Assembly (NCBI RefSeq): GCF_000143415.4
Contig: NW_003314264.1
Location: forward strand, 3,455,435 to 3,519,434
Reading direction: 5' to 3'
From: Selaginella moellendorffii
Taxonomy: Eukaryota > Plantae > Lycopodiophyta
Length of the DNA stretch: 64,000 nt
In this document: positions 15,203 to 55,914 of the stretch, piece by piece
Numbering within the stretch: the first letter of the stretch is position 1
Layout: the number at the start of each line of letters is the position of its first letter
The notes under the pieces: generated by a model
Databases searched by the model: none
What the model saw: the letters and a program-made list of their open reading frames with translations, nothing else
Told to the model about the DNA's origin: nothing
Translations under genes and position numbers: made by a program

Positions 15203-15225
15203 CGCAACCAATCCTCTGATACCAA

Positions 15226-22186: not shown

Positions 22187-22259
22187 TGGAGATGCCGGGT
22201 ATCGATCCCGGTGCCTCTTGCATGCTAAGCGAGCGCTCTACCATCTGAGCTACATCCCC
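22187..22259 (-). tRNA. tRNA-Ala (anticodon AGC)
   Basis: GGGGATGTAGCTCAGATGGTAGAGCGCTCGCTTAGCATGCAAGAGGCACCGGGATCGATACCCGGCATCTCCA, followed by oligo-T tracts. Confidence 0.95.
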
Positions 22260-22372: not shown

Positions 22373-25300
22373 ATGCTCGTCTTTGGTGGATTGGCGCACG
22401 CGCCTTTGCAGCTCAGGTTGATTGTAGCAGTGATCCGTTCCCTTGTTTTTACTCATTTGCTTGTTTTCTAGAGCTTTGACGGCGTCCAATCTCTGCGGGA
22501 AGCATTTGCTATCCAGGATTCCCAGTATCCAGGGTCTGCAGCGTTGCAGGCTAGGGAAGAGAGAGAGGAGTCTCTCGACGATCGTTGCAGAGGTAATTGT
22601 AGGCGGTGAAGTGGATGGTAGCTTCAAGAAGAGCAGCAAGAAGAAAGTGAATGACAATGAGAAAAACGCGAATGGAGAAAATCTCTCGAAAGAGGAGGAG
22701 GAAGAGGCCTCGACCGCCGGACGAAGAAAACGGAATGCTGCTAAACTGGCAGGAACACCGGTTAGTGCAGAGCTAGAGCTAGGCAGTGGCTTAGCAAAAG
22801 GAAGGAAGCGCGTCACGAAAAAAATCCAGGAAGCAACTGCTTTGGGTGGCGAGGAGAAAAGCGTCGCAAAAACCAACCTTTCGAAAGGGGAGGTGGAAGA
22901 GGCCTTGACATCCAGGAGCCCCGGACGAAGAAAAAGGAATGCTGCTAAACCGGAAGCTGGCACGGGTACACCGGTTAATGGAGAACTAGGCAGCGGCGTA
23001 GCAAAATCAAGGAAGCGTGTCACGGAAAAAATCCAGGAAACGACTGTGCAGGACAACGCTGCAAGAAAAGATGGCGAATCCAATCTATTAGAAGCAGAAG
23101 GCTCAACGATCAGGAAGCCTACCTCCAGGATAATGAGAAGTTTGTCTCGGGCAGCTGACGATGGTACCAGTTTTAGCAAAGAAGATTCCGGGGACACTCA
23201 TGGAGATGAAAAGCCTGTTGCCAGAAGAAGGAAGCCATCTAGTGAAAGCTCCGAGACAACTAGAAAGCGAGGGACGAAAAGGCACAAACTTGAAGGTGTC
23301 CAAATGGCCGAGGTGACGACGGAGGATGCCATTCTAATTTCCAGCAATGATAGTACGACGGATGATGCGATCCATATGGAGGGTTCTCGTTCGAGCTCGA
23401 GCTGCGATTCTTCCACTGCTCTACCTTTGGAGGAGGCAGCTGTGGACGCGTCTTTGACACGAAACAGCGGCCAGGAATCCAAAGGTACGGTGAAACAGGA
23501 ACAAGTTTTAGTTGATGGGACCAATGGAACAGCTTTACAAGTTCCTTCCAGGTGCAGTGTTGAAGGTTCCAAGTGTCCGACCTTCGATCTTTCCCAGGCT
23601 ATGGATTCAATGGCCACCGAAAGCTCCAAGCCAGAAAATCTCAGCAACGTGAAAGTAGAAACTTTTCCAGACGTGTGCTCTCAGTGGGACCAGGCGAATT
23701 CAGCTCGGCCTCTCTACTTGGAAATAGAGAAGAGGAGAGTAGAAGAGCAAGAAAGGCGTGCAAGCTCTCCGTCACCTAGAAAGAAAAAGTTCAATCTCGT
23801 GTCCGAGGTCAGGTTTACGCTGGATACTTGCTCGAAGTTTGGAGACGTCAACGGAGCTCTGTCTGCTTACAGCTCAAACAGAGAAGCTGTGAAGTTCGAC
23901 CTCTACAACTACAACGTGTTGCTGTATCTGTGTTCCTCCGCAGCATTGGGAGTTTTGGCACCGGGCAAGCAAAGCAGGCAAAGGCCTGATTTTTCAGATA
24001 ATCAAGCTGAGAATGGACTGGAAGCTTACGCGGAAGATGAAGTGGAAGAAGATGGTGTTGTTCTGCGCGGCAACATGGCTGGCCTGAGCGGAAGAAATCT
24101 AATGGGATTTACGAAGGAGATGATGGACGGGTTCCTGAGGAAAGGACTGGAAATCTTCGAGCAGATGCAAGCAGAGAATGTGGCACCAAATGAAGCAACT
24201 TTCACAGCTCTTGCAAGGCTTTCAGTAGCAAAACGTGACGGTGACTTGGCCTTTGAAATCGTGAAGGCGATGATAGCTGCAAAGATCCCACCCAAGCTCC
24301 GGTGTTATGGTCCTGCTTTGTACGTCTACTTCAAGCGGAACGACCCGGAAAAGGCTTTCGAAGTTTACAACCACATGCTCGTTCATGGTGTTCAACCCGA
24401 GGAGGCGGAACTGGAAGTTCTTTTGCATCTCAGCTCGAAAGCCTGTCTTGGGGATCGAGTGTATTTACTCCTCCATCACCTTCGAGAGACTGTCAGGGAT
24501 GTCTCGCAGTCAACTGTCAGTGTCATCGAGCGATGGTTCAAGAGCGATTTCGCTGGTAGAGTTACAGGAAATTCTCTGCCGGGAGACTTTGACGTCAGAT
24601 GCTCATCTCTTGCGAAAGGAGGGGGCTGGCATGGCTTGGGATGGCTGGGACAGGGAAGATGGAACGTTGGATATACGTCGCTAACCGCAGAAGGCGTGTG
24701 CTGCCGCTGCAACGAACAAATGGTTACCATCGATATTACTCCTGAAGATACCGACGTTTTTGCCAAGTGCATTGCCTCCTTGGCGTTCAAAAGGGAGAGC
24801 AATAACAGTTTTGGTATTTTCAAGGTATGTGTGTTGCAAATATGAACCTTTTTCACGACTTGTCATTTTGCAGGATTGGCTGGACAGGAATGGACCTTTC
24901 GAAACAGTCGTCGACGGAGCAAACGTGGGGTTCTACAACCAGAGATTCAACGGAGAGCTGAATTTTGCACAGGTGCTGCTAAGGTTGCGATTGGTCTTTC
25001 TTCAGTAAACTTACCATTTCTTGCAGCTGGAGACCGTAGTGGCAGATGTACAACGACGATCTGGCAAGTGGCCTCTTATCGTGCTGCACGTTGGAAGGAC
25101 GATGAAAGGCTCGGGCAGATCGAGCTACGCTCAACAGTTACTGCGGCACTGGTCTAATGCAAAGGCCTTGTACATAGCACCGGCGGGATCAAACGACGAC
25201 TGGTAAGGTTCTTATCGATAGCTTTCTGCTGGTTACTGTTTTGGTTCCTAGGTACTGGCTGTATGCTGCTGTCAAGTGCAAGTCGCTGCTGGTTAGCAAC

Positions 25301-25923: not shown

Positions 25924-28432
25924 ATGGGGGGAGGCGCAGGTAGCTCTGAATCCGAGCCCCTTGTAGCTCCACAAGTCGAGGCGGAAGGGGACGACCAGTC
26001 TCCAGTTGAGGAAGTAGCTCTTACAGTGGATACGCGGGATGACCCAACACTTCCGGTGGGAACGTTTCGGATGTGGTTCCTAGGACTTCTGTCGTGTATT
26101 CTGCTATCGTTCCTCAATCAGTTCTTCTCCTACCGAACAGAACCATTCATCATCGGCTTGATATCCGTGCAAATAGTCGCATTGCCGTTCGGGAGGTTCA
26201 TGGCCAACGTTCTTCCCGAGAGAAGCTTTCGAGTTCCATTTACCAGTTCCAGCTTCAGTTTAAATCCGGGCCCGTTCAACGTCAAGGAGCACGTTTTGAT
26301 CACCATATTCGCGAACGCGGGAAGCGGTTTCGGGAATGGAGGTGCCTATGCAATGGGAATTGTCAACATAACCAGAGCTTTCTACAAACGAAGCATGGGC
26401 TTTACTGCGGGACTTCTTCTCGTGATGACAACACAGGTTTGATACTTCGCTTTATACTTTTGAGATTGCATTAAATCTAAGACTGTGTTTGCCAGGTTTT
26501 GGGATATGGTTGGGCTGGACTCATGAAGAAGCACCTAGTGGAGCCCGCTCATATGTGGTGGCCTGGAAACTTGGTTCAAGTTTCTCTCTTCAGGTAGAAT
26601 CATACCACTTAATCCTGGCAAACATTCTTTTTTTCTCTTCCAGGACTTTGCACGAAGAAGATCAGCAGCAAAAAAAGGGCTTTTCTCGGAGCCAATTCTT
26701 TGCCATCGTCATGACGCTGAGTTTTTGCTACTACGTACTCCCAGGGTACATGTTTATGATGCTAACTTCCATGTCTTGGGTTTGCTGGATTTTTCCAAAG
26801 TCCGTGCTGGCTCAGCAACTCGGCTCGGGTTTAAAAGGTCTCGGCCTCGGCTCTTTCAGTCTAGACTGGGCGACTATCTCAGCGTACCTCGGCAGCCCGC
26901 TGGTTACACCGTGGTTCGCGATTTGCAACGTTATCTTTGGCTATCTCGTCGTCATGTACATTGTCACGCCGGCCTGCTACTGGAGCAACATATACGACGC
27001 AAAGATCTATCCTTTGTTCTCGAGCTATCTCTTTACAAAAGATGGCCAGGTTTACGACGTGACCAGCGTCGTGGACAAGAACTTTGATCTCGACTTGGAA
27101 GCTTATGCTCGCAAAGGCCCGGTTCACATGAGCACCTTCTTTGCCTTTTCATATGGGCTCGGGTTTGCCGCTGTAGCCTCTACACTGACTCATGTGGCTT
27201 GTTTCCATGGAAAGTAAGTCTCTTCTCTATGGCGTTTCGATGCTAAAGCTTTTGTTTTTCAGATACATTTGGGAGCGTAGCCGAGCTGCGCTAACTGAGA
27301 AGCCAGACATCCACACCCGACTCATGAGGAAGTACCCAGACGTTCCTCAGTGGTGGTTTCATACTCTTATGGTTATCAGCATCGCCGCCTCAATCGCCAC
27401 CTGCGCATACTACAAGGCAGAGCTTCAACTGCCATGGTGGGGTGTCTTGCTCGCTTGTGTTGTGGCTTCTTCGTTCACCCTGCCAATCGGAGTCATTACT
27501 GCAACTACAAACATCGTGAGTTAACTCTCGCTTCGTGTTTCTTCTTTCAACTTCTCTTGAATTGTCAACTTACAGACCCCGGGACTCAATATCATCACAG
27601 AGTACCTCATGGGATATCTCCTTCCTGGCCAGCCCATGGCAAACGTTTGCTTCAAGACGTATGGCTACATAAGTATGACACAGGCCATCTCATTCTTGCA
27701 AGACTTCAAACTCGGCCATTACATGAAAGTTCCACACCGCTCCATGTTCCACGTCCAAGTGAGTCACATAGCCACAAGAGAAAGGATGATCTCAAAACAA
27801 GTTTTGTTCACTTGCAGTTCATTGGAACAATCGTCGCTGCGATCGTCAACATGTGTTGCGCGTGGTGGCTTCTTGGCTCCATCGAGAACATCTGTGACAA
27901 GTCTCTACTGCCTCCAAACAGCCCCTGGACCTGTCCCAGTGATAGAGTTTTCTTCGACGCATCCGTCATCTGGGGGCTCATTGGGCCAAAGAGGATGTTT
28001 GGCTCCCACGGCGAGTACAAGGAGCTCCAGTGGTTTTTCCTGGGTGGAGCTCTCGGCCCCGTGCTGGTCTGGCTGGCTTCCAGGACCTTCCCAAACGTGA
28101 AGTGGATTCCTCTCATCAATCTCCCGGTGATTCTCGGCGCCACGGCTTACATGCCCCCAGCAACGTCCGTCAACTACATCTCCTGGAGCATCGTCGGCAT
28201 CATCTTCAACTACTTCATCTTCCGGTACCACAAGGGATGGTGGCAGCGGTACAACTACGTCTTCTCGGCGGCCATGGACGCTGGTGTGGCTTTCATGGGG
28301 GTGCTGCTCTACCTGTGCCTGGGGATCGAGAACCGAAGCTTGAGCTGGTGGGGAAACAACGTCGACAATTGTCCCCTGGCCGACTGTCCAACTGCGAAAG
28401 GCATTGTCATCGCAGGATGCCCGGTCTACTGA
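25924..28432 (+). CDS. OPT: Oligopeptide transporter (OPT family, PT clade); exons 25924-26436, 26496-26593, 26644-27213, 27263-27515, 27576-27758, 27818-28432
   Basis: [18 protein letters not shown] and [11 protein letters not shown] signatures, many TM helices, GT-AG introns. Confidence 0.95.
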
Positions 28433-39037: not shown

Positions 39038-40627
39038 TGTGAGACACAAAATCCCTAAGCCCCAAAGTGGAGCCGGAAGGGTGCCATGTGGTAGTGGCTG
39101 AAGTGAAAGCCAAACGAGTGTAACACGTTTGGATCGAAAGCTTCGATTTGAAATGTCAAGAGTGGGAGTGGAACTCCCAGCGAAGGGCTCGAGGAACGAG
39201 TATGAAGCGAGCAATAAGCGAGGCTCCAAAAAGGGGCCCAAAAGGACCAACACGTGACACGTGGATGAGTCTGAGATGGAGTCCGAGATGGACTCGAGTT
39301 GGAGTCTGAGATGGACCCAAGATGGAGTCCGAGATGGAGTCCGAAATGGACTGAGATGGAGTCCGAGATGGACCGAGACAGAGTCCGAGATGGAGTACAA
39401 GATGGAGTCCGAGATGGACCCAAGATGGAGTCCGAGATGGATCCGAGACGGAGTCCGAGATGGAGTCCGAGATGGACCTGAGATGGAATCCGAGATGGAG
39501 TTCGAGAAGGACCCGAGATGGAGTCCGAGGTCGAGACCGAGACCGAGACCGGGACCGAGACTGAGACCAGGACCAAGACCGAGATCGAGACCATTAGGAT
39601 CGAGGCCGAGTCCGAGTCCGAGTTCGAGTCTAAGAGGGTGAAAGCCCAAAGCGTTCGTCTCCCAGACCCTAGGGGGTTTGGTGAGCTCCAAAAGTATAGT
39701 AGGGGGAAGACTGCAGTGGAGCCAGTTTGGCCAAGAAAGGCCAGTTTGGCCCAGGAAAGTTGTACCCAGTGTTGGGTGATGAGCTGCCCACTGGGAAGTC
39801 CAAGACTAGAGTGAACATGGACCGACAAGTGGGGTAGCTTGGTGAAGTGTTCAAGAGCTGACTCTAGTTCCCCCAGGAGATTGATTGGCCGATGCTCCCA
39901 GTCCAAGTGTGGGTGGCACTACCTACTTGGATACCAGGCGTGGCTCAATGGAACCTCGCTCTAAGCCCATGGCTAGAGCACCCAAAGGTGGAAGGTGGGA
40001 AGAGTACCCACGAGGCTTGCGTAAGACCATGGTGTTCCGAAATGTTGCCCCAAAGGCCCAGACTGTGGAAAGGAAGAGGAGTAGTCCTCTAGTGTAGTGA
40101 CCAAGGATATAGTTGTGCGGTGAGGAAGTCCTAGAGGACAGTGGGACTTAGTGGTCAGGCTTGTGGGCCTTGATCCAGTGGCAGTGTTGGCGAACACGGC
40201 CAAGGACAAAAAGGGACTAGGTGAGGGCCAGAAAGGAGATATTGGGGAAGGCTATTCCCCATGTCTATAGGCATTTTAAGGATGCTAAGGAGTGGATCTG
40301 GGATGACCACTCATGGACGGATGGCCCAGTCTTGGAGAGACAGGATTGCAATGCAAGTGGTATTGGACCACCAATGTGACCAAGGTGATTGGGCATGGCC
40401 TAGCGTAACAGGCTGGTATGTTGGTGGTGCTTTGGGGTGTCGGTCATGGGATCGGATATGTGAAGCACTTGGACCAAGTGCAAAGGTTGAGTGGCAGGGA
40501 GGCCATTCTTGAGGCTAGCAAGCCCAAGTCCAAAATAGGACATATGGAGGTTGTGAGTGAGACTCCTCCAAGTGGTCGGAGGTGTGGTTAAGTGACTAAA
40601 GTAGAATGGAAAAATTAGTCGCTTACA
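39038..40627 (+). mobile_element. Solo LTR (1590 bp) of the hairpin-rich LARD-like family
   Basis: TGTGAGACAC..CGCTTACA termini, TSD GGTGC/AGTGC (1 mismatch), homologous to the LTRs at 41079 and 46835. Confidence 0.93.
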
Positions 40628-41078
40628 AGTGCCTTCTATCTTTATTCTGCAGTTTCTCCATGCCTACCATGATTCTCTTGTTCTAGGTGGGCATATGGGA
40701 CATTGTCATGTAACCAAGAAATTGCGCAGGTCTTTCTATTGGCCGGAAATGCAACGTGATATTATCCGATATGTGTGTATCTGCGTTTGGTGCCAAGCTC
40801 GTAATACTCCCCCTCGAGCTGCCAAAGGACAGTTGGAGTCAATTGCAATTTCCCATCCGTTTAAGTTGGTGGTGTTTAATCTTATGGGACCTTTTCCACG
40901 GTCAACTGCTGGCAATGAGTATATTATTATTGCTTTTGAATATTTGATTCGTTGGGTGGAAGTTGGTGCTCTTGCTAGCACCTCTGCAACTGCTGTTGGA
41001 TACTTCCTTCTCAATCGAGTGGTGTTCTAGCACTCTTGTTTAGAGTGGATTCTTTTGGATAATGGTCTTGCATTTATG

Positions 41079-44000
41079 TGTGAGACACAAAATCCCTAGG
41101 CCCCAAAGTGGAGCCGGAAGGGCGCCATGTGGTAGTGGCTGAAGCGAAAGCCAAACGAGTGTAACACGTTTGGACTAAAAGCTCCGACTTGGAAGGTCGA
41201 GAGCGGGAGTGAAACTCCCAACAAAGTGCTCGAGGAGCGAGCACGAGACAACCAATAAGCAAGGCTCCAAAAAGGGACCCAAAAAGGACCAACACATGAC
41301 ACGTGGAAGTGTCCGAGATGGAGTCTGAGATGGACTGAGACGGAGTCCGAGATGGAGTCCGAGGTGGAGTCTGAGATGGACTGAGACGGAGTCCGAGATG
41401 GAGTCCGAGGTGGGCCAAGACGGAGTCCGAGATGGAGTCCGAGATGGACCAAAACGGAGTCCAAGATGGAGTCCGAGATGGACCGAGACAGAGTCCGAGA
41501 TGGAGTTCGAGATGGAGTCCGAGGTGGGCCAAGACGGAGTTTGAGATGGACCAAAACGGAGTCCGAGATGGAGTCCAAGGTGGACCGAGACGGAGTCCGA
41601 GATGGAGTCTGAGATGGACCCGAGATGGAATCCGAGATGGAGTCCGAGAAGGACCCGAGATGGAGTCCGAGGTCGAGACCGAGACCGGGACCGAGACCGA
41701 GACCAAGACCAAGACCGAGACCGAGACCGAGATCAAGACCGAGACCGAGGCCGAGGCCGAGTCCGAGTCCGAGTTCGAGTCCGAGTCCGAGTTCGAGTCT
41801 GAGAGGGTGAAAGCTTAAAGCGTTTGTCTCCCAGACCCTAGGGGGTTTGGTGAGCTCCAAAAGTATAGTAAGGGGGAGGACTACAGTGGAGCCAGTTTGG
41901 CCAGGAAAGGCTAGTTTGGCCTAGAGAGGCTGCACCCAGTGTTGGGTGATGAGCTGATCACTGGGAAGTCCAAGACTAGAGTGAACACGGACCGACAAGC
42001 GGGGTAGCTTGGTGAAGTGTTCAAGAGCCGGCTCTAGTTCCCCCGGGAGATCGTCTGGCCGATGCTCCCAGTCCAAGTGTGGGTGGCACTACCTACTTGG
42101 ATACCTGATGTGGCTCAATGGAACCTCGCTCTAAGCCCATGGCTAGAGCACCTAAAGGTGAAAGGCAGGGAGAGTACCCACGAGGCCCGCGTAGGGCCAC
42201 GGTGTTCCGAAATGTCGTCCCAAAGTCCCAAACTATGGAAAGGAAGAGGAGTAGTCCTCTGGTGTGGTGACCAAGGACACAATCACACAGGGAGGAAGTC
42301 CTAGAGGACAGTGGGACTTAGTGGTCGGGCCTGTGGGCCTTGATCCAGTGGCAGTGTTAGCGAGCATGGCCAAGGACGAAAAGGGACTTGGTGGGGACTG
42401 GAACGAAGATGTTGGGGAAGGCTAATCCCCATGTCTGTGGGCATCCTAAGGATGCTAAGGAGTGGATCTGGGATGATCACTCGTGGATGGATGGCCCAGT
42501 CTTTGAGTGACGAGATTGGGATGCAGGTGGTGTCAGACCATCGTTATGACCAAGGTGAATGGACATGGCCTTAGTGTAACAAGCTGATATGTTGGTGGTA
42601 CCTTGGGGTGTCGGTCATGGGATCGGTCACGTGGAGCACTTGGACCAAGTGCATAGGTTGAGTGGCGGGGATGCCATTCTCGAGGCTAGTAAGCCCAAGT
42701 CCAAAATAGGACTTACGGAGGTTGTGAGTGAGACTCCTCCAAGTGGTCGGAGGTGCGGTTAAGTGACTAAAGTAAAATGGAAAAATTAGTCGCTTACAAC
42801 TTGGTATCGGAGTTGTTCCTTAGTCCGACTCTAATTGGTGGCCAAGTATATCACCACTTGTATTGGAATCGGAAGGTCCTAGATATGGACCTATCCTAGA
42901 GGAGTAGCATGTCAAAAGGACATGGCTCTCCACTCAAGTTCATGCATAAACTTGTGCACGATATGGTGGATGGAAAAGGGCCAGTAAGGGAACGACTTTG
43001 GGATTTTGGGAACAGTATAAGGGTTTCCTCAGAGAGCTGAGGATGTGATCCAGATGAGCGTTTGACGCAGCAAACGAGCTAATGTAGTTGTGGTAAACAA
43101 CTATAGTTGGGATCACGGGGAAGATGCAGACTCCAAAACAGTAAAGGAGTCACAAGATGGTACTCATAAATTTGAGATTGGAATTGTTGACCGTGGGTGG
43201 TCAAATACAGAAGAGGACACCAGTCCTTGAAATGGTAGCTGGGGCTACCTCTAACAAATGCTGGAACAACCCAAGGAGTTGGGGGTGTACTTAAAGATGA
43301 GTTGCTATTCTCATCACATGGACAAGTAGTCATAAGGGGCAAAGGTTAGCCCCAAGAAAATCATCAAGTGTCAGAGTAACACTTGCAAAGATCATCCTTA
43401 TGAGTAGGACATGAATACACGAAGTTGTATTCCAGTGAGTTGGCACCTCTAAGACTAAGACCTCGCAAGTTGTAGGATTAGCAAAGTCCAAAATGCTGGA
43501 TGACTCAAGCGGAGTCAGGGAATGGTCCTAAGGGATTGGTTAGAGCATTTGGACTGAGGTGTATGGTGCCCCATGAGGTATGGGGAGGATCATAAGATCC
43601 AAGTATGAGAACAGTAGGTATCTCATTGATGGTAGAATTGCCATACTAAAGTTGTGGGAAAGATGTTCCCAGAAGAAAGCAACTTTGGCCCAAAGTTGGG
43701 TGCAAACACTATGGTGCGGTGCTAATAGATAGTTAGCATGAGGAACAATTATATTGGTCTTAGGCAAAGTCCTAGACACTAATAAGTAGTGTCATAAGGG
43801 TAGGCTCGTGGGGCCAATGGTGTGGAGACACCAAATGTGCCAAGGTGTGATACCTTGAGGTTATGATGGTGGGTTCATAAGAACCCCTTGCCAAGGGAAT
43901 CCCAATGAAAGCGGGAATGGCATGGCTTAAGCTGGAAGGCATGCGGTTGGAGTGTGGTGACCTAAATAATGATAGAGGTGTGGAAGCACCAAGCAATGAG

Positions 44001-47000
44001 TTGTAAGACTTGACAACTATGGGGCAACTAAGCAAGAGGTGCAAAATAATTGGTTAAATGGGTAGAAGGTAGCTACCCAAGACTTCTTAATGGCATAAAG
44101 AAGTTAGATATACTTTTACGGGAGATAAATTGCTTATGTTGCGATATAATAAGTCAATGTCGTAAACGGGAATGCTCATTGTCATGAGGCCATCATTGGG
44201 ACACCCAAACACTCTAGAACATCAGGAGGTGGTGTTTCGTGTCACAAGGGCAATAGATAAGGCCCAAGGGACTAAGTCCCTAGCGAATGATGGATAGTAG
44301 GTGCTATCCAAATGTCCAAGGTTATGGAGACAGGAGAAGACTGTCTACCCGAATTGGACAGAGCCAAAAATTGAATTTTGGCAAGGCTAGTGATGGGCAT
44401 GTAAAGGCCTATAAGCAGCAACGTTAATCCCAATGTGTGGGATCATAAGGTGAACATGCCCAAGATTGAGGAACCACTCCCTAGGCTATTGGGTAGGTTC
44501 ATCCCTAAGAATACTTGCTAAGGCATAGTAAAATATGCAAAGCTTTCCTCCTAGTCTGGAGGAGAATAACCAAAGGAAACATATGGGGCCAAAAGGCAAG
44601 TAGTATTGGGATGGAACTGAACCATAGAAATCGAAGAGCATATCTAACGGTGGTTATGCAAGTTGGGAGTGGAGAATCAAGAGGGTGCTCGAGGATGTTG
44701 TTGCTAGCAACCGTGATGCCATGGAGAGTCTAAAATATGGAATTGTCCATGTTAGACTATATGGCAACTATAAAGCTTGCAAAAAGGAAGGCCTTAGCAA
44801 GCTAAGGGATAGAGTTCCTTCAAGGTTCCCAAAGACGATTCTAGGTAGCTTAGTACCTAGAAAGGCCAAGTGTAAATGGTTCATGAAACACGCAAAATCA
44901 GAGTGGCGCAGCAGAAGTGTGGTCTTGAAACTTGCCATGAGGCAAGGCTATCAAGGTTAGGGAAGTAGTTCCCGAGTGTTCAAAGAGAGGGCTTTGAACG
45001 AAAGTCGATGGTCAAGGACTTTCACGCTTATGCAGGAACCATATTATAGTGGTCGGAGGACTTGCCAAGCGAGATTGGCAAGTCGGGGGAACAAATACCC
45101 TAGTTGAAGGTGATAACTTCAAAAAGGGTGGGCCATGGGGCCAAGCATGGAGGAGTCCATGCATGATCACAGAATTGTTAGGTGAGAGGATTTGGCAGTG
45201 TGGAGGAACTAGGTTCTTAAGCTGTAGCGTGCTTTAAGTATAAGTTGGTGCACCGGCGTGGGGAGTCACGCCAAGCATCCTACGTGATGCCATCCGTAGA
45301 TGCATATACGGAGGTTGGGTTCGAGTCCCGACCCTCTAGTGCTTGGGTTCGAGTCCTAAATCACTAGGGCGTGGTGATGGTTTGGAATATGAGGACACTT
45401 ATATTTCGGTGGTCATGGACTCTCAGTGAGGAGACTGGTTTGGGCACACCGCCAAGTGAGGGATGCCTAGGAGTCGTGATGCACGGTTAGATTGCTTAGA
45501 GTGAAAGCTCGGCATATCTAATTTGAACACTTTGGTGCAAAGAGCACCAAGGACGTGGTGAATGAGATGGGGACACCCAGTCTTAGTTGCTATGGATCCT
45601 TGGCCGGAAGGGTTGGCTTGGGCACACCGCCAAGTGTGGGGGATGCCCCCAGGGTCATAGTCAACAACATAGAGGGGTCTGGAAGACCTAGTTCCTATGG
45701 GTAGACCTATTAAGGGGTCAAGGTGAGATCACTAGGTGATCTTGTGGCTAAACAAGGACAAGGTCTTTATTTGGGTTAAGGAATATGATTCCGAGTTCAA
45801 AGTGTTGATTTGAACTATTGATAATGGTGTGGCTTGGTCAAGGTGACCAAGTGGAAAGAACACATAAGGGAAATGAGCTATGTCAATGCTGTGGCATAGT
45901 AAGTCCGAGGAAGGTAGTCTCTATAAAAGATCCAAGAAAGGATCTCAAAAGTTGGGCCATGGATAGAGCCCACAGCAGAAAATGTTAAAGAGACGTACTA
46001 GGGGTGAACACCCTCTAGATTTGGCAAAGCAAAGTGTTTGCTATGGAACTGAAAGGAAACCTCAAAAATGGAGGTAGTGATTCTATGTTGTTGGGTGCAA
46101 CAATCAAGGATAGGAGCAAAAGACTAGTGGCTAAGAAAAAAGCCATGGGAATCCCAGGAAAGAATCCAAATGGCAAAGTTAAGCCGAGAACACTAATGTG
46201 TTGGGTGTTAATGGATTGTGGGAAAGGCAATGTTTCCCCAAGGGTGGATTCCCAACCACTCCAATTTGGCGAAGTGGATGCTCTAAAGGGGGGAGCGGTA
46301 AGGTAGCCAAATAATAGGGCCGTGGGCAGCCCTACCACCAATTATGATAACTGAAATTTAGTGTCAAAGGTGGCACGATATCGGAGAGAGGATGATGGTA
46401 TCCTCAAGTAAAGAACTTCCTAGGATAGGGAAGTGGAGTTGCACCATGTGCAACGTAAGGTGTCGGAGACACCTAGGAAATTGACTCTGAGAAGTCAAAA
46501 CTAAAAGTTCCAAAGTGCAAGGTTATGTCAATGGAATCTGAGACTACTCAAGAATGAGTAGTGGAATTGAGTTAGAGAGGGAGTCTCTAATGGGTTTAAC
46601 GAGAAATGAACCAATAAAAGGGAGCAAACCACCCCAGGTGGTCGAATGAGTCTCTATATTGGAGAGACTATGCTCCTTAGAGGATGGACAAGGCATGGTG
46701 CGCCTTTGGTGTCAAACTATAGACAAATATTGGCTGGGTGCCAAGGATGGAACTGGTAATACATATGGGTGTTACTTTATAAGAGGGTTTACCGTTTGAT
46801 GAGGACATCGAACTTCGTCTATGGGTGGTGGAGTTGTGAGACATAAAATCCCTAGGCCCCAAAGTGGAGCTGGAAGGGCGCCATGTGGTAGTGGCCGAAG
46901 CGAAAGCCAAACGAGCGTAACACATATGGACTAAAAGCTCCGACTTAGAAGGTCGAAAGCGAGAGTGGAACTCCCAACAAAGTGCTCGAGGAGCGAGCAC

Positions 47001-47303
47001 GAGGCAACCAATAAGCAAGGCTCCAAAAAGGGACCCAAAAAGGACCAACACATGACACGTGGAAGTGTCTGAGATGGACCGAGACAGAGTCCGAGATGGA
47101 GTCCGAGACGGAGTCCGAGGTGGGCCGAGACGGAGTCCGAGATGGAGTCCGAGATGGACCGAGACAGAGTCCGAGATGGAGTTCGAGATGGAGTCTGAGA
47201 TGGAGTCTGAGATAGACTCGAGATGGAATCCGAGATGGAGTCCGAGAAGGACCCGAGATGGAGTCCAAGGTCGAGACCGAGACCGGGACCGAGACCGAGA
47301 CCA

Positions 47304-47342
<39 letters not shown>

Positions 47343-48420
47343 TCGGGACCGAGACCGAGGCCGAGGCCGAGTCCGAGTCCAAGTCCGAGTCCGAGTCCAA
47401 GTCCGAGTCCGAGTTCGAGTCTGAGAGGGTGAAAGCCCAAAGCATTCGTCTCCCAGACCCTGGGGGGTTTGGTGAGCTCCAAAAGTATAGTAAGCGGGAG
47501 GACTGCAGTGGAGCCAGTTTGGCCGGGAAAGGCCAGTTTGGCCCAGAGAGGCTGCACCCAGTGTTGGGTGATGAGCTGATCACTGGGAAGTCCAAGACTA
47601 GAGTGAACACGGACTGACAAGCGGGGTAGCTTGGTGAAGTGTTCAAGAGCCGGCTGTAGTTCCCCCGGGAGATCGTCTGGCCGATGCTCCCAGTCCAAGT
47701 GTGGGTGGCACTACCTACTTGGATACCTGATGTGGCTCAATGGAACCTCGCTCTAAGCCCATGTCTAGAGCACCTAAAAGTGAAAGGCAGGGAGAGTACC
47801 CACGAGGCCCGCGTAGAGCCACGGTGTTCCGAAATGTCGTCCCAAAGTCCCAAACTGTGGAAAGGAAGAGGAGTAGTCCTTTGGTGTGGTGACCAAGGAC
47901 ACAATCACACAGGGAGGAAGTCCTAGAGGACAGTGGGACTTAGTGGTCGGGCCTGTGGGCCTTGATCCAGTGGCAATGTTGGCGAGCACGGCCAAGGACG
48001 AAAAGGGACTTGGTGGGGACTGGAACGAAGATGTTGGGGAAGGCTAATCCCCATGTCTGTGGGCATCCTAAGGATGCTAAGGAGTGGATCTGGGATGATC
48101 ACTCGTGGATGGATGGCCCAGTCTTTGAGTGACGGGATTGGGATGTAGGTGGTGTCAGACCATCGTTATGACCAAGGTGAATGGACATGGCCTTAGTGTA
48201 ACAGGCTGATATGTTGGTGGTACCTTGGGGTGTTGGTCATGGGATCGGTCACGTGGAGCACTTGGACCAAGTGCATAGGTTGAGTGGCGGGGATGCCATT
48301 CTCGAGGCTAGTAAGCCCAAGTCCAAAATAGGACTTACGGAGGTTGTGAGTGAGACTCCTCCAAGTGGTCGGAGGTGCGGTTAAGTGACTAAAGTAAAAT
48401 GGAAAAATTAGTCGCTTACA
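41079..48420 (+). mobile_element. Non-autonomous, non-coding LTR retroelement (LARD-like), densely structured
   Basis: LTRs 41079-42798 and 46835-48420, perfect TSD TTATG, iMet-type PBS TGGTATCGGAG at 42802, purine-rich PPT before 46835, 4-kb interior without a recognisable gag/pol ORF. Confidence 0.93.
41312..41800 (+). repeat. Hexamer-based minisatellite (CCGAGA/TGGAGT/CCGAGT units) inside the LARD LTR; also at about 39268-39630 and 47068-47420
   Basis: Read directly; copy number differs among the three LTRs. Confidence 0.9.
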
Positions 48421-49167
48421 TTATGGCTAAGGCATTTCATGTTTTGACGTCTCGGTTGGGGATATGCCACACTTTCATGAGTGCTTATCATCCACAATCA
48501 AACGGTCTGGTGGAATAGCTCGTTTGGACATTCAAGGGGATGATTACGAAGTATGTGAATTTTTAGCATTCGGATTGGGATGGTTATTTGCCGTCTCTTT
48601 GGTATGCATATGTCACAAGGGTGCAGAGTTCTGTCGGTGCTTCACTATATAAACTCTTATATGGTCATGATCCAATATTACCAATGGAGTTGGGTTTACC
48701 TGAGGTGCGGATGCTAGGTCATGGGATTAGTATTTGACAAGCATTCTTCCACTTGTCCGAGCAGAGTCTGCCGAACACTTAGGCCGCATACAAGTGGGAC
48801 AACAACGGCGGTACAACTCCCATCATCATCCACCTGCGGAGTACAAAGTGGATGATTTGGTGTTAGTCCATTTTCCCCATCTTATGGTACGTGGTTTATC
48901 TAAGGGGCTCCTTGCATAGTGGAAAAGACCGTATTGGGTGTTGCGGTAAATTGAACCACAAGTTTATGAGGTTCGGCATGACGTCCAGCAAGCTAATCCT
49001 ATAAAGATTGTGCATGTGCAGTGGTTGAAACACTTCATACAAAGGGATCAGGAGCAGTTAATACCACCTACAGATCCGTTGATGCCTCCTCCTGACGTTC
49101 CTCCAGATCCTGGCTTGTCTACAAGAGAACCTTGATGGTCTTTCATTGTTCCGAGAGGAGGGGATGA

Positions 49168-50340: not shown

Positions 50341-50726
50341 TGTCAGGAATCCCCCAATTCTTGCCACATTCCTGACTCTCGCCGGATTCCTGACCTGCAG
50401 ACCACATTCCTGACTCTCGAGACACTTCCCTATTCCTGACTCTCGAGACACTTCCCGATTCCTGAGTCTCGAGACACTTCCCGATTCCTGAGTCTCGAGC
50501 CACATTCCTGATGATGATGTGGCGCCTCCTCGACCTCAGCTGTATTTAGGCCGTCCTCGATCCAAGAATGGTGGAGCTTCATCAACCTATAGTATATATA
50601 GGTTAGCCTTGTTCCATTTCTCCACAATCTGAATCAACACCAGTCTAAGGCCTCTTCTTTGTTTTCACTAGCTTTTTCTCTTTGTCTTTAGCATTTTCCA
50701 GTCTTGATCTTGTTGGGGTCTTGACA
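50341..50726 (+). repeat. 5' LTR of element 3, with 26-bp internal tandem repeats (one more unit than the 3' LTR)
   Basis: ATTCCTGA(C/G)TCTCGAGACACTTCCCG units; TATATATA at about 50593. Confidence 0.93.
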
Positions 50727-50824
50727 GTTTGATTCAGATTGTGTTTTTTGCTTTTCTTTTAGCTCGTTTTGATTATTTGATTGCCTTTGTCTTTTTCCCC
50801 CTTTTCTTTTCTTTCTTCTTGCCA

Positions 50825-51796
50825 ATGGAGTCTCCAAGCCATCCTGATTTCTTTGCCGAAGTCCTTGCAAAACTCCAGTCTGAGAATACCGAGCTGAAGG
50901 CGACCCTTCTTCGCATGCAGCAGGAGCTTGCTTCACTTTCGGCTCAAGGATCCAGCAAAGTTCCTGAACCGAAGGTGAGTTTCCCGGCAAAATTTTCAGG
51001 CAAGCGTTCGGAGCTTCGTGGATTTTTGAACCAAATGGAGCTGATCTTTGCACTTCAACATTGGCGGTACCCCACTCCCGAGTCTCAAATCGGCGCGATT
51101 GGGACGTTGCTCGAGGGTGCAGCTTTGTCATGGTTTTCTCCTCTTCTGGAGAAGAGCATGAAAGGGGTTGTGGTTCCGGAGCTGATGGATCTTCAATTGT
51201 TCAAAGAGAAGCTCGAAGCATGTTTTGGCGAGACAGATCGGGTTCGGGCTGCTACCACAAAGATGAGACGTCTCTCTCAGGGGTCTCGTCCTGCCTCGAT
51301 TTACGCTGCAGAGTTCCAACTCCTTGCCTTGGACACTCAGTGGGATGAGCAGGCCCTGATTGACCAATTTCGTTTCGGCCTCAACAAGGGTGTCAAGGAT
51401 TTGTTGCTCACCATGGAGGATCCCAAGGACTTGTCGGACGCCATCAACAAAGCTGTTCGATGTGACAATCGTCTCTTTGAACGTCGTCAGGAAAGTCGCC
51501 GCGCCGCTGTTTTTCCGTCCCAGACTCAGGAATCCCAGCTTGAGTCTTCGGGGCATAGTCCTGAACCTACTGCTCCGGTCCCGATGGATATTTCTGGTAC
51601 TTCCCGACTCATTAGAGGGAAGTTGAGTCCTGCTGAGAGGCAACGTCGAATATCTCATAATCTTTGCCTCTACTGTGCTGATCCTAATCACAAAGCAGCT
51701 GTGTGTCCCAGGAAGCCTCCCCGATTGCTCGAGTTCACTCTGCCTCAAAGTCCACTTCTGTTGCAGTCGGGAAACGACCCTGTCCAAACAGAGTAG
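50825..51796 (+). CDS. Gag of element 3 (intact ORF)
   Basis: PAKFSG..GFL, LEGAALSWF, LSQGSRP..YAAEF, PVPMDI, CLYCADPNHKAAVC. Confidence 0.92.
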   Translation: MESPSHPDFFAEVLAKLQSENTELKATLLRMQQELASLSAQGSSKVPEPKVSFPAKFSGKRSELRGFLNQMELIFALQHWRYPTPESQIGAIGTLLEGAALSWFSPLLEKSMKGVVVPELMDLQLFKEKLEACFGETDRVRAATTKMRRLSQGSRPASIYAAEFQLLALDTQWDEQALIDQFRFGLNKGVKDLLLTMEDPKDLSDAINKAVRCDNRLFERRQESRRAAVFPSQTQESQLESSGHSPEPTAPVPMDISGTSRLIRGKLSPAERQRRISHNLCLYCADPNHKAAVCPRKPPRLLEFTLPQSPLLLQSGNDPVQTE

Positions 51797-54700
51797 GAGC
51801 TGTCTGTTTGGACTCCCCAAATAAAAATCACTTTTCTTCCTTATCAAGCTCCTCACCACCTTTCATCAAAGCCACCACCAATTCCCGCAACTTCCGCGTC
51901 CCATGTCTCTTTTCTTTCACCGGACAATCAGGACTCAAGGCTTTGGCGCTACTGGACTCGGGTGCAACTTCCTGCTTCATGGACACGGACTTTGCTGCCT
52001 GATATCACGTTCCTCTTTCTCCTACCATACGGGATTTGAGGGTTGAAGGCATCGGCGGGCATTTTGTGTCTCCATCTTCTGGACTTAGGGAAACATTGCC
52101 CGTTCGAGTACACATCGGGTCCACCGTCACCGATATCGCCTTCAACATCATCAACAGCAAGTCCTCCTCTGTGGTGCTCGGTCTTCCTTGGTTCCAACTA
52201 CATCAGCCTCAGATTTGTTGGAAGGACTTACAGCTCATCTCTCCCACATCACCATCTCCCACGGCTTCCCCTGGTGTTCATCGAGTCCGAATCAGGAAAA
52301 GTTCCCTAAACTCAAGTCGGGGTTCTGTTCCTGACTCTACGAAGTTTTCATCCTCTTCTCTTTCCTCTCTTCCATCTTACACTGGACAGTATCCTCGTCT
52401 CATCATTCCATTTAGTCGTACCCCTTCTCCTATCTCCACAATCACTATGAAAGAACTCCTTCATGAAGAACCTCTTTTTCTTTTTGCTTTGCATGTTTCT
52501 CCTGTCAGTCTTCCTGAGAAGTATCATGATTTTGGGGATGTGTTTGACAAGAAAAAAGCTAGTGTACTGCCTGTTCATCGGCCTTATGATTGTCCCATTG
52601 ATTTACAGGAAGGAGCGTCACCTCCGTAGGGGCCTATCTACGGGTTATCCCCGTCCGATCTTAAGGCCCTCAAAGAGTATGTGGATGAGAACCTTGCCTC
52701 GGGCTACATTCAGCATTCGCAGTCCCCGGCTGGAGCGCCTGTCTTCTTTGTCAAGAAGAAGGATGGGAGCTTGCGGCTAGTCATTGACTACCGAGGTTTG
52801 AACAAGGTGACTGTTCGGAACCGTTATCCGCTGCCCCTGATCTCGGACCTGTTGGAACGCCTCGGCGGTGCCCGCTTCTTCACCAAGATCGACCTCCGTG
52901 GAGCATACAACCTGATCCGGATCCGGCTTGGTGATGAATGGAAGACTGCGTTCCAAACCCGCTATAGCCACTTCGAGTACACTGTCATGCCATTTGGCTT
53001 GACAAATGCTCCAGCGGTTTTCCAACACATGGCGAACGACGTTTTTCGGGAGTTTCTTGATCAGATGGTGATCGTCTACCTCGATGACATCCTCATCTAC
53101 TCAAAAACTCAGGAGGAGCATGACGAACATGTTCGCAAGGTGCTAGCGAAGCTGCGAGAACACGGCCTATACGCGAAACTTGAGAAATGTTCCTTTGATC
53201 AGCAGTCTGTGGAGTTCCTTGGGTACATTGTCACTCCTGAGGGTATCACGATGGATCCTGCTAAAGTCAAGACTATTCTCGAATGGGAGCCTCCACAATC
53301 AATGTCGGACGTTCAGGTTTTCCTTGGCTTCGCCAACTTCTACGGCAAATTCATTGATCACTACTCTGACATTGTCCTTCCTCTCACACATCTCACTCGC
53401 AAGGATGTTCCCTTCTCTTGGTTTGCTGCTGCCCAGCAGGCCTTCAACACACTCAAGGCGGCCTTCAGTTCTGCTCCTGTCTTGATCCATGCTGATTCCT
53501 CACAACCTTTCTTCATTGAGGCTGATGCCTCCGACTTTGCCATTGGTGCTGTGCTGTCTCAACTCGGAGCGGATCACAAACTTCATCCGGTCACTTTCCA
53601 TTCTCGGAAATTCCAGCCTACGGAGATCAATTACGAAATCCACGACAAGGAGCTCCTTGCCATCGTGGATTCCTTTGGAGAGTGGCGCCGTTTCTTGGAG
53701 GGGGCGAGCCATCAAACAACAGTCTGGACGGATCACAAAAATCTCGAGTACTTTGCCACTTCCCGAGTTTTAAGCCGTCGTCAAGCAAGGTGGGCACAAT
53801 TCCTGAGTCGGTTTGACTTTGTTATCAAGTACAGACCTGGAAAGTTTCAAGGCCTTCCTGATGCTCTTTCAAGGCGCTCCTATCTCAGTCTCAGGCCTGG
53901 TAATCCTGCCTTCGATCAACAGGATCAAGTTATCCTCGGTCCTGATCGGCTTCAAGTTATGGCAATTTCCCTGGCCCCTCAGGACTCCTCCTTGATGGAT
54001 GCAATCAGAAACGATCTTCAATCCGATGATCTCGCTAGCGACATTTTCCCCCATCTTCAGGCTGGACACCCAGTGACTCCCGACTGCCAGCGATTTGACG
54101 AGTTCGAGTTCTTAGATGGCTTATTGTACCGTGGGGAGCAGCTTTACGTTCCTGAAGGTGATGCTCGAAGGTTGGTCCTGATGGCGTGCCACGATAGCCC
54201 GACTGCTGGTCACTTCGGCATTGCGAAAACCTATGAGCTAGTTGCACGGGACTTTTGGTGGCCTCACATGGACGACTACATCAAAGCTTTTGTTACCTCC
54301 TGTGACACTTGTGCCCGGAATAAGGTACCTCGCCACCTTCCTTCAGGTTTGCTTCGTTCCCTTCCGGTCCCTTCAGGTCCTTGGGAATCCATCTCCATGG
54401 ATTTCTTGAGTGATCTTCCGAGTTCTGGAGGCTTCAACAGCATTTTAGTCGTGGTGGATCGCTTCACAAAGATGGTGCACTTCTTGCCATGTACCAAGGA
54501 GTTTTTGGGCGAGGACATGGCAAAACTGGTATTTAGGGAAATTTTCCGACTTCATGGGATTCCTATAGATGTGGTTTCAGATCGGGGGCCTCAGTTCATC
54601 TCTCATTTCTGGCAACGGTTTTTGCAGCTGCTTGGAGTGAAGGCCAACCTCTCTTCGGCATATCATCCTCAAACTGATGGGCAGTCCGAGCGAACGATTC

Positions 54701-55542
54701 AGACGTTGGAACAATTCTTGAGGTGCTTCATCAACTATCATCAGGATAACTGGTTCAATATCCTTCCCCTTGCTGAGTTTTCCTATAACAACTCTGTTCA
54801 CTCCTCTCTTCGAGTTTCCCCCTTCTTTGCGAACTCTGGCCGAAATCCCTGATTCAATCTCTCACTTCCTTCTCCATCTGAATCCTCTCGTTCAAATCCC
54901 CGCTCTGAGGCATTTATCTCCAACCTCCAGGAAATCCACAACTCCATCTCCTTCCACCTCCATCGTGCTCAGGAATCTCATAAAACATTTGCCAATGTCC
55001 ATCGTCAGGATTGTCCCCCTTACAATATCGGGGATAAAGTCTGGCTCCTCAGGCGAAATATCTCCACCACCAGGCCCTGTCCAAAACTCGATTTCAAATG
55101 CCTTGGTCCTTTCCCTATCACTGCCATCATTAATCCTGTCACTTATCGCCTTGCACTTCCCTCCTCATATCAAATTCACCCCATTTTTCACTCCTCTCTC
55201 CTTGAGCCTTATATTCCCAGTCCTATTCCAAATCGGGTCATTCCTCCGCCTCCACCAGTGCAGCTCGAGGATGGGTCTGAGTACGAGGTTCAGGACATCC
55301 TTGATTCCAAGATTTCACGGTCTAAACTCTACTATCTAGTGGACTGGAAGGGTTACGGACTTGAGGAACGCACTTGGGAACCTGCGGACAACCTGATTCA
55401 TTCTCCTGACCTTGTTCAGGACTTCCACCGCCGCTATCCTTCTCGTCCCAGTCCTCATTTTTTTTCTCCCTCTCCCATCCCTCGCCGCTCATCCCATCCT
55501 CCTCTTCGTTCTCGTTCACATCCTCGTTCCACTCGTTCTTGA
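51776..55542 (+). pseudogene. pol of element 3 (PR-RT-RH-IN-chromodomain), in the -1 frame, with three nonsense codons
   Basis: LLDSGAT, YLDD, DASDFAIGA, SMDF, SDRG, HPQTDGQSER, YEVQDILDS..YYLVDWKGY..TWEP; stops at 52000-02, 52627-29 and 54850-52. Confidence 0.92.
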
Positions 55543-55553
55543 GGAGGGGGTGC

Positions 55554-55914
55554 TGTCAGGAATCCCCCAATTCTTGCCACATTCCTGACTCTCGCCGGAT
55601 TCCTGACCTGCAAACCACATTCCTGACTCTCGAGACACTTCTCGATTCCTGAGTCTCGAGACACTTCCCGATTCCTGAGTCTCGAGCCACATTCTTGATG
55701 ATGATGTGGCGCCTCCTCGACCTCAGCTGTATTTAGGCTGTCCTCGATCCAAGAATGGTGGAGCTTCATCAACCTATAGTATATATAGGTTAGCCTTGTT
55801 CCATTTCTCCACAATCTGAATCAACACCAGTCTAAGGCCTCTTCTTTGTTTTCACTAGCTTTTTCTCTTTGTCTTTAGCATTTTCCAGTCTTGATCTTGT
55901 TGGGGGTCTTGACA
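55554..55914 (+). repeat. 3' LTR of element 3
   Basis: Homologous to 50341-50726. Confidence 0.93.

Follow-up and report, generated by a model that had tools for sequence, protein, structure and literature searches.

A large excess of short perfect hairpins in the interior of a non-coding, LARD-type LTR retrotransposon of Selaginella moellendorffii

Large retrotransposon derivatives (LARDs), such as Sukkula of barley, are helper-dependent, high-copy elements with long terminal repeats (LTRs), a primer-binding site (PBS), a polypurine tract (PPT), target-site duplications (TSDs) and a multi-kilobase interior without gag or pol (Kalendar et al. 2004, cited through PMC7215508). The element described here occupies positions 41079-48420 of a 64,000-nucleotide stretch of Selaginella moellendorffii DNA (the window, meaning the whole stretch that was analysed) and shares all of these traits. 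It is a complete non-coding, non-autonomous, helper-dependent LTR retrotransposon of the LARD type, and its interior holds about ten times as many short perfect hairpins as expected by chance. It differs from the described LARDs in its lycophyte host and in its LTRs, which measure 1.6-1.7 kb instead of about 4.4 kb. The LARD internal domain is reported to specify a conserved RNA secondary structure (PMC7215508); the predicted structure here is a strong local excess of hairpins in one interior copy. No description of a roughly tenfold excess of short perfect hairpins with purine or GNG loops and flanking CCAAG was found in the LARD literature.

Other non-coding or non-autonomous elements offer partial parallels. 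The packaging parasite VL30 of the mouse is a non-coding LTR element that is packaged by a helper, murine leukaemia virus (PMC4859993, PMC4997597). VL30 is an animal element and has no sequence relation to the element studied here. Its packaging signal is a localised region, not a dispersed array of hairpins. In wheat, RLG_Sabrina and RLG_WHAM, two gypsy families, are non-autonomous and very abundant, and have only the PBS, the LTR termini and a few motifs in common with their helper, RLG_Wilma (PMC9744471). They still encode GAG, whereas the present element encodes nothing, and the wheat paper makes no mention of hairpins or secondary structure.

[quoted passage not shown] They are smaller, at under 1-4 kb, and the total of 7342 bp measured here lies well above the TRIM range. 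The element is therefore not a TRIM, which would be under about 4 kb and have short LTRs. Nor is it a retrozyme: retrozymes carry a hammerhead ribozyme in their LTRs, and Rfam finds none here. The unusual point is the shape that the structure takes: about 60 hairpins, short, perfect and unrelated to one another in sequence, are strewn at random along a strand rich in purines, and they have loops rich in G and A and CCAAG at the foot.

Short perfect hairpins in the interior

Robust hairpins were defined as perfect Watson-Crick stems of 6-10 bp closing a loop of 3-10 nt, and dinucleotide shuffles of the sequence served as the null. The interior (42799-46834) contains 59 of them, against 6.1±2.0 in the shuffles. 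The excess is thus real and very large, though less dense than first described. Stem lengths peak at 6-7 bp: there are 35 stems of 6 bp against 4.4 in shuffled sequence, 17 of 7 bp against 1.2, and 5 of 8 bp against 0.33. Stems of 5 bp are near chance, with 22 observed and 16 in the shuffles.

Other kinds of repeat in the interior occur at chance level. Mirror repeats of the same geometry number 9 against 8.7 in shuffled sequence and direct repeats 4 against 8.5, and these two controls rule out an artefact of composition or local repetition. Inverted repeats with stems of at least 7 bp and wider spacers are likewise as frequent as in the shuffles, both at 11-20 nt (3 against 1.8) and at 21-40 nt (4 against 3.2). 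Tight hairpins alone thus carry the signal.

The density of hairpins is 11-18 per kb in the bins from 43 to 47 kb and 0-5 per kb in the rest of the window. The latter range includes the coding retroelements, in which the initial annotation of this stretch had also seen no such pattern. Every hairpin listed in that annotation was found again in its place. Its picture of a wall-to-wall array with a stem-loop every 20-30 nt was too dense, since the mean distance between robust hairpins is 65 nt and about 36% of the interior bases lie in hairpins. More than a hundred hairpins, as it had counted by eye, can be reached only by including stems of 4-5 bp, which are near chance; the predicted fold of the interior has 104 hairpin loops, against 73 in shuffles. 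Hairpins do extend into the LTRs, as had been proposed, but their enrichment there, outside the 12-nt tandem array, is only approximately fourfold (7 against 1.7).

The interior is not a tandem repeat, which agrees with the initial annotation: it has no periodicity, no spectral peak and no tandem structure. Tandem Repeats Finder and self-BLAST, together with the random-like coefficient of variation (CV) of the hairpin spacing and the lack of a spectral peak, rule out an origin from a tandem or degenerate repeat. The only internal repeats found were a 19-nt duplicate (45440/45618) and a 28-nt double unit, and comparison of the hairpin units with one another revealed no residual similarity.

Folding energies also set the interior apart. 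The mean z-score of 150-nt segments is -2.40 on the + strand and -2.51 on the - strand, well below shuffled sequence and below the -0.45 (+) and -0.36 (-) of 31 control windows. Minimum-energy folding of the whole interior, done in 800-nt pieces, gave -1378 kcal/mol for the + strand against -1134 for shuffles, and 49 of the 59 hairpins are kept in the resulting structure. The stems hardly ever extend beyond a mismatch and end abruptly. Imperfections had been described as often G-U, but the pairs that flank the stems are G-U in 10 and A-C in 7 of the 59 cases, exactly as composition predicts.

Loops and motifs on the sense strand

The sense strand of the element is defined by its PBS and PPT, and three features of the hairpins, namely the composition of the loops, the GNG and GAG motifs within them and a CCAAG motif at the stem foot, all fall on this strand. 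The loops are purine-rich, as the initial annotation had it: those of hairpins with stems of at least 6 bp have a purine content of 71.3%, compared with 60.2% for hairpins expected by chance (p=3e-5). Their C content is 7.9% compared with 16.6% in chance hairpins (p=5e-6). Since T is not raised in the loops, the bias is not simply due to deamination. GNG occurs in 27 of 81 loops, where 15.8 would be expected from the linker sequence (P=0.0015). The trinucleotide GAG is found in 13 of the 81 (5.1 expected) and GGAG in five (1.15 expected).

CCAAG is the most over-represented 5-mer of the interior, with 22 occurrences against 6.2 expected (3.5-fold, z=6.7), and its reverse complement occurs only five times. 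The enrichment of the motif extends to the LTRs (8 copies, 2.2 expected). Across the family, as represented by 41079-48420 and 39038-40628, it reaches 5.5-8 per kb, compared with 1.2 per kb elsewhere, and the ratio of CCAAG to CTTGG is about 3-4:1. In the interior, 13 of the 22 copies lie within -5 to +6 nt of the 3' end of a hairpin, where 5.4 would do so at random (P=0.0004). No extended consensus surrounds the motif.

The element, its family and its surroundings

The anatomy of the element is given in Table 1. The initial annotation had described a non-coding retroelement with a PBS, a PPT and perfect TSDs and without gag or pol, and this description holds in full: the same TTATG stands on both sides, the anatomy is complete and the coding searches are blank. 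The PBS was recognised as a match to the initiator-Met-type pattern TGGTATCGGAG at 42802; in short form, the primer site of the element is TGGTATCGGAGC. Its last base (42813) is C in most family copies, as judged from the majority letter in public contigs. The sole other PBS-like match in the window, at 15213-15224 on the - strand, is part of an unrelated gypsy element.

Table 1. Coordinates of the element, its internal features and its insertion site.
Feature	Position	Strand	Basis or remark
Solo LTR, same family, 88-89% identical	39038..40628	+	Flanks GGTGC and AGTGC
Host gypsy integrase (zinc-binding domain), split by the element, resumes after 48425	40629..41078	+	Pfam Integrase_H2C2, flank reading
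Left TSD, TTATG	41074..41078	+	Direct reading; same as 48421-48425
5' LTR (TGTGAG...TTACA), 1720 bp	41079..42798	+	Full-length alignment to 46835-48420
12-nt (GTCCGAGATGGA-like) + 6-nt tandem array in 5' LTR	41311..41804	+	Tandem Repeats Finder
Non-coding interior, 4036 bp, 60% purine on sense strand	42799..46834	+	
PBS, initiator-Met tRNA type, TGGTATCGGAGT	42802..42813	+	Pattern match
Tandem pair of T-arm-like hairpins (GGTTCGAGTCC; loops of 7 nt; similar to a Pol III B-box)	45315..45374	+	
G-rich PPT GGGTGGTGGAG, just 5' of 3' LTR	46823..46833	+	Direct reading
3' LTR, 1586 bp	46835..48420	+	Alignment to 5' LTR
Right TSD, TTATG	48421..48425	+	Direct reading

When the tandem array is left aside, the two LTRs share 97.1% identity, and transitions make up 31 of their 35 differences. 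By this divergence of 2.9% the element is young, at about 1 million years if the grass rate of 1.3e-8 (PMC9744471) is used, a rate uncalibrated for the host plant. Both LTRs contain an array of 12-nt (GTCCGAGATGGA-like) and 6-nt (CCGAGA) repeats, which in the 3' LTR lies at 47067-47426 and differs in length from that of the 5' LTR. A 254-codon open frame on the minus strand of the LTR array exists purely because the array is repetitive.

Hidden coding capacity in the interior is ruled out by several searches. The longest interior open reading frame has 108 codons, and Pfam returned nothing at E<=1 for the eight interior frames that reach at least 60 codons. A tblastn search with the gag and pol proteins of the window gave no match in the interior, and the period-3 signal is 2.7, compared with 27-43 in coding controls. 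Known RNAs were equally elusive. A scan of Rfam at E<=1 returned only two sub-threshold SCARNA18 chance matches, with no ribozyme and no rRNA among them, and ARAGORN found no tRNA in the interior, so that identity with a known RNA family, ribozyme or tRNA is dismissed.

The pair of T-arm-like hairpins is the 28-nt double unit mentioned above (2.1 copies by Tandem Repeats Finder). It is predicted to fold into two hairpins with 7-nt loops, and ARAGORN detects no tRNA at this place. The pattern GGTTCGANTCC occurs three times in the window against an expectation of 0.12.

The element is inserted in a degenerate gypsy element, whose integrase matches Pfam Integrase_H2C2 at 40629-41030 (E=9e-15). 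A solo LTR of the same family is inserted 450 bp upstream of the full element in the same host integrase gene. These two independent insertions of one family 450 bp apart, both in the N-terminal region of the integrase of a single gypsy element, may be coincidental or may point to a preference in insertion.

The family reaches a very high abundance in two related organisms. In one public run of the same organism as the window (X1), 104,485 of 2.8 million contigs belong to it, falling on 5.25 kb of the element. A second, related organism (X6) yielded 2,569 family contigs with the same majority letters. Family contigs are mostly 90-99% alike, and the interior is covered to about a quarter to a half of the depth of the LTRs. 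A metagenome scan for other copies returned only two chance matches of 22-24 nt, and protein searches for them with spurious interior frames gave no match. Differences within the family are mainly transitions, with G>A and C>T counts proportional to base content, which is the pattern that would be expected for methylated repeat DNA.

Variant sites were compared singly. Among the 40 sites listed out of 434 there are 35 interior differences from the family majority, and these touch only a single stem out of 59, which hints weakly that the master copies already had the hairpins. One of the changes, G>A at 45274, broke a 6-bp stem that the family majority has. An adjacent double change at 46400-46401 lengthened a stem of 4 bp to a perfect one of 6 bp in the element studied.

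Elsewhere in the window, a young gypsy element (50432-55905) is nested downstream, with 287-bp LTRs (50432-50718 and 55619-55905) that are 99% identical, gag at 50729-51796 and a reverse transcriptase-RNaseH-integrase frame at 52681-54852. Two tRNA genes, tRNA-Leu(AAG) at 366-446 and tRNA-Ala(AGC) at 22187-22259, are also found. Protein-coding features comprise an F-box-like gene at 581-1594 (a weak match), a PRORP/PPR gene at 22443-24845, whose best match is a Selaginella moellendorffii protein with 71% identity, and an exon of an OPT transporter at 27350-28432.

A possible packaging platform or by-product of copying

Since the element encodes nothing, its copying must depend on an autonomous element that supplies Gag, reverse transcriptase and integrase. 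Our tentative preference is for a LARD-type element whose RNA carries many hairpins that are bound by the Gag protein of the helper. The genomic (+) RNA would be a purine-rich strand with about 60-70 independent short stem-loops, the loops G/A-rich and poor in C, and with CCAAG often at the 3' foot of the stems. Such an array could serve as a multivalent platform for helper Gag, which would bind through its CCHC zinc-knuckle nucleocapsid, and binding at many sites would allow the non-coding RNA to vie for a place in virus-like particles. Exposed G residues in the loops of stem-loops, for example GGAG and GGUG, are a known target of retroviral nucleocapsid, and its binding to GNG loops is established. 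Gypsy elements whose coding sequence includes a CCHC zinc knuckle occur in the same window and represent a possible type of helper. A purine loop is reported to be critical for packaging of mouse mammary tumour virus RNA by Gag (PMC8096270), and LARDs are said to specify a conserved RNA structure (PMC7215508).

The hairpins themselves would most likely go back to fold-back template switching, which would have produced them as perfect inverted copies that were afterwards kept. The stems are perfect, end abruptly and lack G-U pairs, which suggests that each hairpin arose in one step by such a switch. We infer that the RNA would fold in this way in cells, that Gag would bind it and that selection would have maintained the array.

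Several observations weigh against this packaging role. The excess of folding energy over shuffles is alike on the two strands, at about -245 and -250 kcal/mol, and, with the z-scores also equal, the strand asymmetry in folding that would be looked for in a selected RNA is absent. Stems that tolerate G-U pairs number about 25 above shuffles on either strand, with no excess of G-U. As the G-U excess is missing and the strands are equal, the stems alone cannot reveal which strand folds, or whether it is RNA rather than DNA that does so. The spacing of the hairpins has a CV of 0.73, against 0.72 for random placement, so that their positions are statistically random, and the stems are only slightly enriched in GC. 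A comparison of three LTR copies turned up only changes that break stems and no compensatory ones. The association of CCAAG with hairpins is absent in the LTR, and the tests of loop motifs and of CCAAG were partly post hoc. No autonomous element with these LTRs was found in the window that would identify the helper. The family is also nearly silent in two RNA-seq samples of the same species: of the 9.2 million reads covered in each run, 4 and 13 came from it, and these lie in both orientations. Selection on RNA folding, to which the initial annotation had pointed, is thus plausible but unproven: the three sense-strand asymmetries speak for it, and the lack of a G-U excess and of a strand difference in folding against it. 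The further ideas of that annotation, that the stems evade Dicer by being short and shield the RNA from decay, are speculative.

Much of this evidence would also suit a neutral origin, in which fold-back template switches, during reverse transcription over the family's many replication cycles or during DNA replication, pile up where there is no coding constraint and have no function. Single events of this kind are known to yield perfect hairpins (PMC5453318, PMC8794818), and these resemble the ones in the interior in being perfect short inverted repeats with short spacers and a one-step birth. The abrupt, purely Watson-Crick stems with scarcely any pairing beyond a mismatch, the absence of a G-U excess, the identical excess on both strands, the tight spacers of 3-10 nt only and the random positions are all accounted for, and the double difference at 46400-46401 is itself template-switch-like. 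What such switching does not lead one to expect is the strand-specific composition of the loops, the GNG loops and the CCAAG at the 3' feet. Known template-switch hairpins are scattered in genomes and structured RNAs, whereas here there are about 15 per kb in one mobile element, and the window's other retroelements lack such an excess both in their LTRs and in their untranslated parts. The peak of stem lengths at 6-7 bp, next to 5-bp stems that scarcely exceed chance, also argues against it, as does the single stem touched among the listed variant sites, with its hint of hairpins in the master copies. A purely neutral history is the chief rival to the packaging role and somewhat less likely than it.

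A role at the DNA level and inheritance from a hairpin-rich source are less likely. By forming cruciforms or hairpins, whether in single-stranded cDNA or in chromosomal DNA, the short palindromes might affect reverse transcription, integration, recombination, chromatin or silencing, and the exact strand symmetry and purely Watson-Crick pairing of the stems would fit such a role, as would substitutions like those of methylated repeat DNA (dominant transitions, G>A and C>T in proportion to base content). Stems of 6-8 bp are, however, too short for stable extrusion of a cruciform from duplex DNA, and their sequences are all different, which leaves no common site for a protein. The asymmetries of loops and motifs point instead to a single-stranded sense molecule, and a DNA-level role is improbable. 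It is similarly hard to believe that the hairpins are relics of an old tandem array of a hairpin unit, or of a host sequence rich in hairpins, for instance an rDNA spacer, that was captured. The short internal duplication (45440/45618), the 28-nt double T-arm unit and the recurrent CCAAG are what such an ancestry might leave, but there is no tandem structure, periodicity or residual similarity between hairpin units, Rfam returns no rRNA or other match, and LTRs, PBS, PPT and TSD clearly delimit the sequence.

A bolder form of the Gag-binding proposal is that the whole interior has evolved into a "super packaging signal", in which some 60-70 dispersed, independent stem-loops with exposed GNG or purine loops and a CCAAG foot, strung along an otherwise unpairable purine-rich sequence, would engage the nucleocapsid of the helper's Gag at many points simultaneously and let the RNA out-compete the helper for encapsidation. 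This version is speculative and, on balance, doubtful. If it were true, such a signal would be a design principle for the RNAs of parasitic retroelements that is so far undescribed.

How non-coding LTR retrotransposons succeed over their helpers in packaging and reverse transcription is poorly understood, and families of this kind fill large parts of plant genomes. The element described here provides a clean and very abundant case, whose interior is dominated by one measurable feature, about 60 discrete hairpins. It would be informative either way. Should the hairpins be selected, they would amount to a packaging architecture of a dispersed kind. Should they be neutral, the element would preserve, at a density seen nowhere else, the traces of fold-back template switching in the course of retrotransposition.

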